This document shows, piece after piece, positions 54,806 to 61,791 of a DNA stretch of 64,000 nucleotides. The position numbers and the translations under genes are program-made. The stretch comes from Oikopleura dioica (lineage: Eukaryota; Animalia; Chordata), in assembly GCA_907165135.1 (NCBI GenBank), contig OU015566.1:12028001-12092000 (forward strand), written 5' to 3'. The notes below the pieces were generated by a model. That model did no database searches and was not told the origin of the DNA. It worked only from the letters and a program-made list of their open reading frames with translations. Each line of letters starts with the position of its first letter. Position 1 is the stretch's first letter.

Positions 54806-56367
54806 ATGTTCAAAATAGCAATCGTCGGCGCCGGCCCGGCAGGTGTCTCTGCAGCTGCCCGATTGTTGAAATCAGCCGCGAATAAGGATAGGGGTTCTTG
54901 ATCTTTCTAGGTGAAGATATTTTATATCTACGATTCAGCATGTATTCCATCCTAGTGTATCTTCAACTTTCGGTCGCACATCTCCTACCCCGCAACTTTG
55001 GTCTCCACATAGCGACTTATTTTTATTAATAATTGAGAAAATCAATACAATTCGCAATAATTCCATAAAAGAGAAGAACCACCTGTAGTTCCAAGTCAAC
55101 CTCTTCGACCGAAGCCTTGTTCCTTGGGGTCTTCTCCGCACTGGTGTTGCTCCAGATCATCCCGAAGTAAAACATACCGCTCAAACCTGGTCAAATGTCG
55201 CTGATTTTCCAAACTTCCACTTTTTCGGCGGAGTGAATGTTTCAGACTCGAACGAAAAAGGGATCAAATCCCAGTTTTCGCTGAAAGAACTGATGGAATG
55301 CCATGATTCCGTATTTCTATGCAACGGAGCGTATAATGCAAGAAGACTGAAGATCCCAGGAGCCGATTCAGAACGAGTGATAAATGCGCAAAAATTAGTC
55401 GGATATTATAATGCAGATGTGATGCAAAATCTTAGCTTTAATCCTTCTCATCTACAAGGTAAGACTTGCGAAAATATACTTTTATAAGATTCTCACTGAG
55501 AATTTCTCAGGCAACGTCGGAATAATTGGTGGTGGTAATGTCGCGTTAGATGTCGCACGAGTTCTATTGGAGCCAGAACTTTTACAACCAACTGATGTTA
55601 GTAAACATTTCATCGAGCAAGCTCAGAAAGTCGACAAGATCTCCATTTTTATTCGCCGCGGACCATTTGATCTCCCGTGCACGACCCGAGAGCTGCGAGA
55701 GCTGATTCATCTCCCGTCGGTTTCGAGAATTATCATAAAAGGCTTAGATGAACCACTCGGAGAATCAGAAAAATACAAAAAGCTCATGAAATCGAGAAAA
55801 GTTCAAGAACGGAAGACGAAGCGCCTGTTAAAATTGCTTGCTGAATCAGAAACTGACCAGAAAGCCGGATCGTTCGGAAAAGGAAAAACCGTCGAATTCA
55901 ACTTCTTTCATACCCCAGAAAATATCTTGGACGCCGACAATGGTGGAATATCTGTAGAGTTTTCTCACCAAGGAAACTCAAGACGTGTTGATCTCTCAGC
56001 GCTGGTAGAATCTCTTGGCTACGAGAAAACACCAGTTTCTAACTTCATTACTGATGTTGATACGAAGACAGGACGAGCAAGTGCGTTCGACAGACCGATT
56101 TACCTGTCAGGCTGGGCACTTGGCGGGGCGAAAGGAGTTGTAGGTGATTCAACAGAGTCTTCAAGACTCGCTGTTCAAAGTTTATTCGACGACATTGAAA
56201 GTGGAACTCTTCAAGCTTTACCAAGACCTGACATCGTCTCATTACCTCATTCTAACTGGGAGAATTGGAGAAAAATCGACGAAGAAGAGCTCCGAAGAGG
56301 GCAAGAAAACGGAAAACAACGTGATAAAATTCTTTCAATATCTGAAATGCTCAAGATAACTGAATGA
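54806..56367 (+). CDS. FDXR: NADPH:adrenodoxin (ferredoxin) reductase
   Basis: IAIVGAGPAG, PWGLLRTGVAPDHPEVK, IIGGGNVALDVARVLL, IRRGP, YLSGWALGGAKGV, WRKIDEEE...GKQRDKI. Confidence 0.92.
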
Positions 56368-56441: not shown

Positions 56442-59400
56442 ATGAGTTTTGGTGGTGAGGGGCTCTTTGATGTATTTTCTGGAGAGTCCGGCGCTTCTGC
56501 CGTCGAAGCAAAGACTAATGGAGAAGGAAAGAGAAAAATGGACGATCCAGTCGGTAAAGCCCCATTGCTCTTCAAACCTGTTGATCAATCTGTATTTTAG
56601 CAATAATCGACGAGAAAAGACTGAAAGATGATGACGAGGCGGAAATGCGTACTCTTCTTGATTCACTGCCGAAAATCAAAACGGTCAAACTCGACGTTGC
56701 TGGATGCTCGCACGAAGTATCCGTTCATTCTAGCGAAGAAGTGCCTGAATTACAAGTAAACACCTTTCTCTGACCTATTGATAATGTTTTTCTAGCCACG
56801 AACAGGTCCACCAGCTAGGGAATACAAATTTACTCTTGATCCCTTCCAAGAAAGATCCGTGCTCTGCCTCGACAATCATCAGTCTGTTCTTGTTTCTGCG
56901 CATACATCTGCTGGAAAAACGGTCGTCGCAGAATATGCGATTTCTTTGGCTCTCCGAGACAAGCAGCGAGTCATTTACACGACTCCAATCAAGGTTATTC
57001 TCCTGCTAACTGAAAGGCTTTATGAAAAATAAATTCAGGCACTCTCCAATCAAAAATATCGAGATCTTCAAGAGGAATTCGTCGATGTCGGTTTAATGAC
57101 AGGTGATGTGACGATCAATCCGTCCGCATCCTGCCTCGTAATGACAACTGAAATTCTCCGATCAATGCTGTACAAAGGCTCTGAAATTATGCGCGAAGTC
57201 CAGTGGGTGGTTTTTGACGAAATTCACTACATGAGAGACTCTGAGCGAGGCGTTGTTTGGGAGGAGACGATCATCTTGCTCCCTGACAACGTTCGATACG
57301 TTTTCCTTTCTGCGACAATCCCCAATGCAAAGGAATTCGCCGAGTGGATTTGTCATCTGCATAAGCAGCCCTGCAATGCCGTGTATACGGAGTACCGTCC
57401 AACTCCTCTCCAGCACTACATCTTCCCCTGTGGAGGTGATGGACTTCATTTAGTAGTCAACGACAAGAGAGAGTTTAACGATGCGGAGTTCGACAATGCA
57501 ATGGCTGTATTGAGGTAATTATTCACACAAAACTCGATCATAACTTCAACTCAGAAATGCTGGAGATATGGCTAGGGTTTCTCACGGGAAAATGGTAGTT
57601 ATCACTTTTTTCTGAAAATTTCATCGTTAGCTTAATTTGACCCGCTGATTCCAAAAATACAAAAATCAGAGGCGCCGGTCGACGTTTTGGTGGTGCAGCG
57701 CGCGCTGTCTTGGCGCACTTGGTGCAAGGGAGATTTTTCAGTGAAAATTTCCCAAAATAGTTTTCTATAGGTTTTTGAACAAAGTGAACCCGAAACTAAT
57801 GGTTATTTTGTTAAATAACAGTTATTATTATACAGCAGTATCTTACAACATGTCGATTTAATTATTTCATGAGATACCACTTCTGAGGTAGGTACTTCTG
57901 CTCTGATTCCTCTCGAAAAAATAAGAATAGTCTGCTTTGACTTTTTTGTTTAATCTATGGAAAAGTTCGGATTCCTTCTGCCGAAGGAATATGTTCTTTT
58001 TTTTTGAATCTTTAATACTTCTGCAAACCCATGTTCAGAAACTAATTGACAATTAGCTTTTTTCGGCATTTTCGAGGGTAAGCCGCATTATTGACAATGA
58101 AATTATCATGTTTTAATCGGAAATCCCCCAATTAATGCATCGAACCACTTTATTTTGTCACCTTCTACAGAAAGGTTCGGACTGCTCTCCGGGGGAGTGA
58201 GTAAATATACGCGTTTTCAGGCCAGGCGCTGACCCCGTGCGCGACTCCAGCGCGCGCGCAATGTCAAAAAGTTTTAGTTAAATGCGGATTTCTTGGTGAC
58301 CGGCTATTTTCGGCTATCCAAAAATTTAAGAGGTGAATTCTTTATGCTTGAGATTGATCATATTCAAAAATCGAGACTGTGTCTGAGTGTGTTCAGTGTT
58401 AAAGTGAAGATTTTTCACTAAAATTTCCATTTTTTCGCCTTTTTTTCAAAGAAAACTTAAAATTTGATAGCATATTGTTAATCATCATCCTCGATTTAGT
58501 ATTGTCCTTAATTTTCATATAAAACCTATGAGAAAAAGTGATAACGGCAATCGCGGTCAGAAGGCGTTCCGAGCCCCGCGCGCTCCCGTGAAAAACCCTA
58601 GATATGGCAAAAGGCGACGCTCGAAACAGACGACAACCTCGAGGAGGAACTCAAGGACCAAGCAACATCAAGAAGCTCGTCAAATATTGCCACGAGAACA
58701 GCTTCCTACCGCTGATTGTCTTCAGTTTTTCAAAGAAAGATGTCGAAGGTACTAATAGATCTCTAGAACTGATTTCTCCCTTTTTTGTTGATAGCGGAGA
58801 TTAACACCAAGAAATGCTTCGAGGCCCTCGATCGTGGGAATCAAAAGCATTTCATGCTAGTTTTTGTATGTGAAAGTCTATAATTTATTGACTACAACTG
58901 AAGCGCTTATGAGCAGTTGTTGGAAAGGAAGGCAATAAGGTTGGCTCGGTCACCCTTCTTCTTGAGGCCAGCGAAGACCATCTTTGTTCCTAAAAAACCC
59001 ATTATATCTAGTTCCTTTAAGAACAAATCTTACCGGGAACAAATTTCTTGGGGTTGGTGAGCCACTGCTCGAGGGAAGATTCATCCCAAACGATGCCAGA
59101 AGCTAGAATAGATGTTGTCATCTCTCTTTCATAAAATTTAATTTACATTTGATGGCATCAGAGTAGTTGAAGGAGGTCTGGGCGGCGGGCTTGCCGTAGA
59201 ATCCAGCAAGAGCAGGTCCCTGACCGTGCTTTCCTCCGGCTTCGTAGGAGTGGCACTAGATATCGTTAACTACTGATTTTTTTAATAATGATTTACCTGT
59301 TTGCACTTCTGGACAAAAAGCTTCTTTCCCTTGGCTTCAGACATGTTCTTATCTACAAATTTCGATAGTGAAATGTGGACTAGAGCAACAAGTTATGCTG

Positions 59401-61791
59401 AAAAAGGATTAACCCGGGCGGCCTCCCCCACGGCCATCTGAAACATGCCCTGCAGGGAGATAGGTCAAAATTGCGTAATCTATGAAAAATCGAGCACTTA
59501 CTTGCGAGCTTGTATCGAACTAACTGAAGTGCTGATAAGCAAAATATCGCAAAATCAGCGATGTTCTAGAAAAAGTTACATAACTCAAAATATTCAAAAG
59601 CACTTTTCAGCAAATGCGATGGAAATCCAAAGACAGGGAGGCCTTGACTTCACGACAGAACACGAAAAGAAGCTCATCACGGAAGTTTACAACAATGCCA
59701 TGGAGTGTCTATCTGACGAGGATCGACAACTCCCTCAAGTAGCAAATATCCTCCCAATTTTGAAAAAGGGAATCGGTATTCACCACGGTGGTCTTCTTCC
59801 TATCCTCAAAGAAACCATCGAAATCCTTTTCTCTGAAAACCTTATCAAATGTCTTTTCGCGACGGAAACTTTCGCCATGGGAGTCAACATGCCCGCAAAA
59901 ACTGTTGTCTTCACATCTCATAGAAAATTTGATGGAAAGGTTGGAAAATTTTCCCGAAACGTAAACTAATCATCCTTTAGGACTTCCGACCTATCAGTGG
60001 CGGTGAATATATCCAAATGTCTGGTCGAGCCGGTCGTCGAGGCATGGATACCAAAGGTATCGTCATTCTCATGGTCGACGACCAGATTACGCCCGCCATT
60101 GCGAAGGAGCTTCTTCAAGGCAAAGCAGACGCGCTCAACTCAGCTTTCCATCTCACCTACAACATGGTTCTCAACTTACTCCGAGTGGAAGACATCAATC
60201 CCGAGTGGCTTCTCGAAAAATCTTTCTACCAGTTTCAGCATTGCAACAAGGTTCCTGGCATGATTAGAGATCTTGATGAGCTCAGCGAGAGTTTGAAAGA
60301 TATCACTGTTGACGATGAAGAGTCCGCCACCAGCTACTACAAGCTTCGACAGCAGATTGAAAGACTCGGCCGACAAATGGACCAGATTATTCTTTCGCCA
60401 AAGCATGTGCTTCCATTTTTGAACCCAGGGCGATTGGTCAAAGTCAGACATGGAAAGAAGAACTTCGGATGGGGAATAATTGTCAACTTCAAGAAACAGA
60501 AAGAAACTGGACCCGATGAGGAACCGATTTATCGCGTCGACGTCATGGTAAACTGCGATAAGGAGTCGATCAAGAAGACTTCTACTGATCTCGCCCAGCC
60601 TGCAGAAGGTTAGTTATCAATTGATGTTGCCTTCTCTGAAAGCGCATTTTTAGGATCTGATGGAACAATGGAGGTCATCGGCTTTTCACTGAAAGACTGC
60701 CTATCATCACTGAGTTGCATCCGCCTTATGATTCCACAAAAACTTACTGGAGCAGATGAGCGACGAAAATGCCGAGACCAGTTGAAAGAAATTCAGCGGC
60801 GATATCCTGATGGCCTTCCACTGCTTGATCCAATCGAGGACATGAATATTATTGGTAGCTGTCTTTATTAAAGAGTGGCCTCGTTAAAATTTGATTCAGA
60901 TCCGAAAATCACGGAAATAATTCGAAAGATTGAAGCTTACGAAAAGCGTCTTTTCACACACCCACTTCACGGAGGGCAAGATACAGAAAACCTTCTTTCT
61001 CAAGTCGAAAAGAAGCAAAAAGTACTGAGTGGAATCAAAGACAAGAAGAAGGAACTGAAGAAAGCCAAGCAAGTTATCCAGCTGGACGAGTTGAAAGCCC
61101 GCAAACGAGTTCTCAGAAGACTTGGTTATGCAACGGATGCTGATGTAATCGAGACGAAGGGTCGCGTCGCCTGTGAGGTTTCAACTGCTGATGAGGTAGA
61201 AAAATGATTGATGATGATCTCTATTAACTTTTTGCGTAGCTTCTTCTCACGGAAATGATTTTCAATGGAATTTTCAACACAATGACTGTGGAACAGTGCA
61301 CTTCGGTACTTTCCTGCTTGATTTTCCAAGAAAAGGGTGATCCACCGAAACTAGCGGAGGAGCTTGCAGCGCCATTGAGAACCATGCAAGAATGTGCCAA
61401 ACGAATTGCGAAAGTTTCGATCGAATGCAAATTAGATTTGGAAGAGGAAGAATATATCAAGGTTAATTTTTCACTGCTATTCTAATGAAACATTATTTTA
61501 AGCAAATTAACCCCAACCTGATGGATGTTGTTGATGCTTGGTGTAAGGGAGGAACCTTCAAGCAGATTGTTGAGCTTACAGAAGTGTACGAAGGATCGAT
61601 TATCAGAGCAATGAGAAGACTGGAAGAGCTCTTGCGGGACATGTGTCACGCTGCGAAGGGTATATTTTATATCAAAAAGGCACATCTAATGTTTTTAAGC
61701 TATCGGAAATGAAGAGTTAGAGGCAAAGTTCACGCAAGGAATTGAAAAGATTAAGAGAGATATTGTTTTTGCTGCCTCACTCTATTTGTAG
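56442..61791 (+). CDS. MTREX: Exosome RNA helicase MTR4 (SKIV2L2), interrupted by a hAT element and hosting a nested gene
   Basis: [94 protein letters not shown]. Confidence 0.97.
57573..58600. mobile_element. Non-autonomous hAT-type element (1028 bp) inserted in an MTR4 coding exon
   Basis: TIR TAGGGTTTCTCACGGGA / TAGGGTTTTTCACGGGA (16/17); perfect 8-bp TSD GATATGGC (57565-57572 / 58601-58608); no transposase ORF; removal restores [15 protein letters not shown]. Confidence 0.93.
58907..59344 (-). CDS. CYCS: Cytochrome c, 3 introns, nested antisense in an MTR4 intron
   Basis: [16 protein letters not shown]|[36 protein letters not shown]|[23 protein letters not shown]|[27 protein letters not shown]; CxxCH and the Met ligand are intact; absent from the ORF track. 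Confidence 0.93.

Follow-up and report, generated by a model that had tools for sequence, protein, structure and literature searches.

A young hAT-like transposon insertion in a coding exon of MTR4 in the Oikopleura dioica reference assembly

The MTR4 gene and the element within it

The stretch of DNA that we analyzed (the window, 64,000 nucleotides) is chr1:12,028,001-12,092,000 of OKI2018_I69, which is an assembly of Okinawan Oikopleura dioica (64,281,565 bp in 19 scaffolds). It includes the gene for MTR4, whose fifth exon contains a transposon (Table 1). In searches with the exons taken one at a time, the product of exon 4 aligns to residues 229-354 of human MTR4 (E = 4e-70, 237 bits, versus 128 bits for SKI2W), and the sequence on the 3' side of the element, from 58604 to 58748, matches residues 359-403 of the same human protein. 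As for Pfam domains, DEAD is found before the insertion site and Helicase_C is found after it. MTR4 is single copy in this assembly, and the next-best locus is 52% identical. MTR4 is essential in yeast and in mammals, and we presume that this is true of O. dioica as well.

Table 1. Features of the MTR4 locus and in-frame splice routes across the element (positions are those of the window)
Feature	Position	Strand	Basis or effect
MTR4 exon 4, end of RecA1 / DEAD domain	57039..57514	+	human MTR4 match, Pfam DEAD
Native GT-AG intron 4, 40 nt	57515..57554	+	direct reading, GAG/GTAATT...CTCAG/A; conserved in the closest contigs
Exon 5, left part, ending in the left TSD copy	57555..57572	+	
Left TSD copy, GATATGGC	57565..57572		
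Non-autonomous hAT-like element, 1028 bp	57573..58600	+	inside coding exon 5
Left TIR, TAGGGTTTCTCACGGGA	57573..57589		
Subterminal inverted repeat, 13 nt	57598..57610 and 58533..58545		inside the element
First in-frame stop (TGA) in an mRNA that keeps the element	57613..57615	+	read-through translation
Right TIR, reverse complement of TAGGGTTTTTCACGGGA	58584..58600		
Potential AG acceptor	58600..58601		
Right TSD copy, GATATGGC	58601..58608	+	
Exon 5, right part, RecA1-RecA2 linker and start of RecA2	58609..58748	+	GT donor next, at 58749
Route AT to AG	57566 to 58601		exact restoration; only exact route
Route GA to AG	57563 to 58601		one Gly lost
Route GG to AG	57575 to 58601		N-M-A added
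Route GG to AG	57587 to 58601		7 residues added
Route GG to AG	57575 to 58613		K-G becomes S
Route GT to AA	57577 to 58612 (AA at 58611-58612)		K becomes R
Route GT to AG	57515 to 58629		13 codons deleted, invariant across lineages

The human sequence AGDLAKGD corresponds to AGDMAKGD in O. dioica, and the element falls between bases 2 and 3 of the Ala codon. The original prediction, which was made from the letters of the sequence without any database searches, held that a 1028-bp element with a perfect 8-bp TSD splits the G-D-M-A codons of MTR4 and that reading through into it would end at a TGA in its left arm. We agree on each of these points: our reading of the TIRs and the TSD gives the same element, AGDMAKGD is interrupted, and translation into the element would add 14 foreign codons and then stop at that TGA.

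The TIRs are 17 nt long and match each other at 16 of 17 positions, and the 8-bp TSD is perfect. The TIR motif occurs twice in the window, at the two ends of the element, versus 0.23 occurrences expected by chance. There is no ORF of more than 42 aa within the element, and a search of Rfam with the element gave no match. We describe it as hAT-like because of the 8-bp TSD, the TAGGG (YARNG) ends, and the presence of multiple copies with different TSDs; the assignment to the superfamily is based on the TSD and the TIRs only. In a predicted RNA fold, the TIRs pair with each other and so do the 13-nt subterminal repeats, as would be expected for any element with TIRs. Finally, the end of the right TIR (CCCTA) and the first base of the TSD (G) together form CCCTAG, which is the potential acceptor that is listed in Table 1.

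We also note two features of the genes around the insertion. The 862-nt intron 5 of MTR4 (58749-59610) contains a cytochrome c gene in the antisense orientation (minus strand, 58900-59350), whose last exon matches residues 76-99 of cytochrome c; the same nesting is present in contigs from other Oikopleura lineages (for example, L033). And there is a gap of only about 75 bp between the end of the upstream gene (55567-56367), which is on the same strand, and the start codon of MTR4 (56442). This spacing is compatible with an operon, which is a common arrangement in O. dioica.

Empty sites in other lineages and the ploidy of the locus

Twelve contigs from Tara Oceans, ENA, JGI, and Logan encode the 140-aa product of exon 4, either exactly or nearly identically, and 10 of the 12 (L031-L040) reach past the insertion site and are thus informative. 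Exon 5 is uninterrupted in all 10 of these, with a single GATATGGC in each, and each alignment to the window breaks off at 57572 and resumes at 58600, with 9 nt of overlap. The informative contigs represent five lineages (haplotype groups), which are about 95%, 89%, 77-86%, and 75-84% identical to the window. For the closest lineage (about 95% identical), the neutral divergence is roughly 8-12%. As all of the other haplotypes that were sampled have an empty site, the insertion is derived and young, and it postdates the split from the closest of these haplotypes. The copy in MTR4 has 17 private substitutions in 973 sites. Since a cut-and-paste element takes its substitutions along when it moves, these bound the age of the insertion without dating it.

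The other lineages also speak to the importance of the interrupted residues. Around the insertion site, a 19-residue peptide is invariant at the amino acid level in all five, despite many synonymous changes. The "loop" at this site is thus under constraint in larvaceans, and the constraint is strong on the residues that splicing would remove or change. The 13-codon stretch had earlier been described as a variable loop, and we would drop that label, as its residues do not vary among the five lineages.

Searches for the insertion in other public data gave little. A scan of JGI metagenomes for the pattern of the insertion junctions found nothing, and a scan of the same metagenomes for the TIRs by themselves gave three chance matches, which have no homology to the element. 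Exact look-ups in public collections of the ORFs that span the junctions, and of the 66-aa ORF that follows the element, returned no hits. With close records excluded, the negative results for the junctions and for these ORFs are weak. A word-based protein search with exon 4 returned genomic ORF calls from other lineages only, with no transcript-derived or annotated models among them.

Is there a second allele? The scaffolds of OKI2018_I69 include the PAR (17,092,476 bp), chr2 (16,158,756 bp), chr1 (14,533,022 bp), and the X- and Y-specific regions (12.96 and 2.92 Mb, respectively; PMC8008620), and coverage of the autosomes was about 258x, versus about 137x for the hemizygous X-specific region (XSR; PMC8008620). 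The window is autosomal and thus diploid in the male that was sequenced. (We considered an argument from hemizygosity for MTR4 and dropped it, as the locus is on chr1 and outside the X-specific region.) The DNA came from one male, from generation 47 of a laboratory culture, with a heterozygosity of 3.6%, and the 99-Mb diploid assembly was merged with HaploMerger2 to give "reference" and "allelic" sub-assemblies. Given the autosomal, diploid location and the merging of the haplotypes, it is possible that the insertion is heterozygous. There is no second copy (haplotig) of the MTR4 locus with an empty site in the assembly, and the HaploMerger2 paper did not confirm that the tool prefers the longer allele.

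The transposon family

Allowing up to one mismatch, we counted 52 occurrences of the TIR motif across the genome, versus 0 in a reversed control. There are around 19 intact elements, which form subfamilies of about 1.0 kb, 0.7 kb, and 0.53 kb, along with one element of 3.2 kb, and the family as a whole has about 25-30 copies. Perfect 8-bp TSDs with different sequences flank 16 of the 18 copies that we checked. Within a subfamily, copies diverge from each other by 3.5-5%. Two pairs of copies are 100% identical: L003 and L004 are 31 kb apart in the Y-specific region (2,675,904 and 2,707,226), and L060 and L061 are 42 kb apart on chr2 (4,608,569 and 4,650,678). Within each pair, the TSD and the flanking sequences are the same or nearly so, and these pairs look like segmental duplications that carried the element along rather than separate insertions.

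We did not find an autonomous copy with the same ends. The 3.2-kb element (L052:501-3717, in the X-specific region at 9,564,113-9,567,329) is the longest with the TIRs of the family and has a perfect TSD, ATCATCCG, and it does not contain any ORF of 80 aa or more; the one locus with a hAT domain that we examined lacks these TIRs. The genome does encode at least seven near-identical ORFs, in frames of 177 aa, with the hAT dimerisation domain (L046-L051 and L053, at 0.63-0.74 Mb of the PAR, 0.38-0.39 Mb of chr1, and 13.85 Mb of chr2). Several of these form a repeated array with a spacing of about 5 kb, and the ends of these loci are unlike those of the TAGGGTTT family.

Besides the copy in MTR4, the family has three more copies in exons (L006, L009, and L062; the latter two are located in long open frames), and none of the three has an AG where the right TIR meets the TSD. 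Instead, they give CCCTAA or CCCTAC. The original prediction had proposed that the TIR end and the TSD combine to make an acceptor, and CCCTAG is indeed present in MTR4, but this is because the MTR4 TSD happens to start with G, which is a 1-in-4 accident and not a general trait of the family. The acceptor is accidental, and the family is not built as an introner. Also, among the old and degenerate fragments of the family that we checked (L013 and L016-L018), there was no clear case of a copy acting as an intron.

The copy at L006 (L006:1501-2489, or 3,811,643-3,812,631 of the X-specific region), which is 81% related, interrupts an exon of a single-copy sugar transporter of the MFS family. It falls between the parts of the protein that match positions 274-390 and 403-452 of Pfam's Sugar_tr. 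The sequenced male was hemizygous for this locus and thus lacked any intact allele of the gene. No AG is found near the right end of this copy in the sense of the gene. For testing splicing, the sugar transporter is a cleaner case than MTR4.

More broadly, 7 of 16 independent sites of the family are in open frames of at least 100 aa, as compared to 58% of random positions in the window. In this small sample, the depletion of the family from coding-like sequence is slight at most.

Splice routes and the fate of the insertion allele

Near the ends of the element, no pair of canonical splice sites would keep MTR4 in frame. There are three GT donors ahead of the stop codon (57577, 57595, and 57598), and past the final in-frame stop, three AG acceptors are available (58601, 58613, and 58629). 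By enumeration, all nine pairs shift the frame. The in-frame routes in Table 1 include the three that had been proposed originally. The arithmetic of those three was right, but the list was incomplete: the exact route from the AT at 57566, the GT-AA route (57577/58612), and the route from the GG at 57587 were absent from it. Just 3 of the 15 dinucleotides that start with G are in phase, versus 5 predicted by chance, which means that in-frame routes are not in excess of the chance number.

In O. dioica, 11-12% of introns are not GT-AG (PMC7072748; 10.1101/2023.05.09.539028). The non-canonical types that have been reported are GA-AG, GC-AG, GG-AG, GT-CG, and GT-AA, and AT-AG is not listed (10.1101/2023.05.09.539028). 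The published context of the GA-AG introns is AG/GAA, with AG upstream and A downstream (PMC7072748), while the candidate GA donor at 57563 has the context CTG/GAG. All 11 of the MTR4 introns that we read are GT-AG with a G at position -1. Their acceptors include GCGTAG/ and TTCTAG/, and the CCCTAG/AT that is formed by the right TIR and the TSD resembles these. Close to the candidate donors are two stronger GT donors, AGG/GT at 57577 and ATG/GT at 57595, which shift the frame with every AG.

Overall, we favor the reading that this is a young and probably heterozygous loss-of-function allele, and not a nascent intron, although we would give this no better than an even chance. A hAT-like element would have inserted recently in exon 5 of single-copy MTR4, on one of the chr1 haplotypes of the Okinawan reference male. 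The resulting allele would be mainly loss-of-function, or leaky at best, and an intact second allele would have sheltered it in that animal. It would then have entered the reference when a single sub-assembly was made out of the two haplotypes. Both the heterozygosity and the loss of function are what we infer from the sequence of a single genome and its relatives. We prefer this reading because the insertion is derived and is absent elsewhere, because the locus is diploid and the reference was merged from a single animal, and because there is no canonical pair in frame, the contexts of the non-canonical sites are weak, and the flanking residues are constrained. As a recessive loss-of-function allele, it would be an ordinary polymorphic transposon: young, derived, absent elsewhere, with a premature stop codon, and at an autosomal diploid locus. 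On present evidence, the MTR4 case does not differ from such an allele.

Nevertheless, several observations do not sit easily with a null allele. The family shows little depletion from coding-like sequence (7 of 16 sites versus 58%, with the caveat of the small sample), and the copy in L006 splits a single-copy gene that was hemizygous in the sequenced male. Also, non-GT-AG introns are 11-12% of those that O. dioica splices, and the gain of introns from transposons has been published for this species.

These observations leave a nascent intron as a serious alternative, which we consider to be somewhat improbable. The major spliceosome would remove the element at non-canonical sites, this would yield enough functional MTR4, and the allele would be nearly neutral. 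Pairing between the inverted ends, as in the predicted fold of the TIRs and the subterminal repeats, may help by bringing the two copies of the TSD together. O. dioica does use the GA-AG, GC-AG, GG-AG, GT-CG, and GT-AA types of introns, but exact removal of the element would require AT-AG, which is not among the reported types, and neither the GA donor nor the GG donors have the conserved AG/GAA context. Furthermore, the stronger GT donors at 57577 and 57595 would compete with them, always at the cost of a frameshift. The acceptor does look like native MTR4 acceptors, but it is a chance product of the first base of the TSD. And although coding sequence does not show a clear deficit of family members, and a hemizygous X-linked gene contains one of them, the insertion in MTR4 is missing from all of the other haplotypes, so there is no sign that it has survived selection. 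There are published precedents in the transposon-born introns of Oikopleura, of Fritillaria, and of algae that bear introners.

How similar is MTR4 to the known cases? One comparison is to the Ds and dSpm elements in the wx, adh1, and bz genes of maize and to Tc1 in unc-54 of C. elegans, in which transposons within exons are spliced out, if imperfectly, as was shown with cDNA. As in those genes, a coding exon contains a cut-and-paste element that has TIRs and is flanked by a TSD, and splice-like sites in or next to the ends of the element could remove most or all of it, giving leaky or altered products. But those cases are proven by cDNA while MTR4 is known from genome sequence, and MTR4 has no canonical pair in frame. 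The general model for the splicing of transposons from exons has been reviewed (PMC3443670, PMC11282704).

A second comparison is to the introners of Micromonas, Aureococcus, and others (Huff et al. 2016 and Gozashti et al. 2022, as summarized in PMC11282704). As with these introners, a DNA transposon is in an exon, and one splice site is at the end of the element while the other is co-opted from the TSD. In introners as they are summarized there, however, this design is found in every copy, there are hundreds to thousands of copies, and removal is exact. In contrast, the family in MTR4 has about 25-30 copies, forms an AG only if the TSD begins with G, and has no GT donor to match. Thus, the splice site is not present in every copy, and we found no exact in-frame removal at sites that the host uses.

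The third comparison is to the non-canonical introns of Fritillaria borealis, which derive from MITEs (Henriet et al. 2019, as summarized in PMC11282704 and PMC13326754). This is a related group of animals in which elements with TIRs are found in genes, their ends can pair, and they are reported to be removed by the major spliceosome without using GT-AG. But according to these summaries, most of the introns in Fritillaria are AG-AC or AG-AT, and they depend on a duplicated and divergent U2AF, whereas exact removal from MTR4 would be AT-AG. If the exact intron were to start with AG (at 57564), then it would end with CT.

Events of this kind, in which a polymorphic transposon within an exon could be on its way to becoming an intron, are known already. 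What the MTR4 case adds is a single-copy and essential host gene, a clear series of empty sites, and an accidental acceptor from a TIR plus a TSD. A broader claim would be that O. dioica removes fresh insertions of hAT elements or MITEs from exons non-canonically, with the aid of pairing between their ends, so that MTR4 is the live birth of an intron; we doubt this.

Finally, we think it is very improbable that the insertion is an artefact or is not in the germline (that is, a long read that was chimeric, a mis-join in the assembly, or an insertion in somatic cells): it is seen in a single assembly, whose estimated error rate is 1.3% (PMC8008620), but that assembly is based on 221x nanopore coverage and was polished. 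Moreover, real transposition is what leaves such a signature, with a perfect 8-bp TSD whose sequence occurs just once at empty sites, TIRs with exact ends, and an element of full length for its family.

If the element is not spliced out, as under the sheltered loss-of-function allele that we favor, then this is an ordinary deleterious insertion, and it implies that a merged reference carries broken alleles, which gene predictors may turn into false introns. Conversely, the non-canonical removal of fresh insertions, if true, would explain how O. dioica can have an exonic copy in an X-linked gene that is hemizygous. And if the element in MTR4 is spliced out, then the birth of introns could be conveniently assayed here in a chordate that is kept in the laboratory, given an essential gene with a single copy, a known ancestral allele without the insertion, and a distinct peptide predicted for each splice route.
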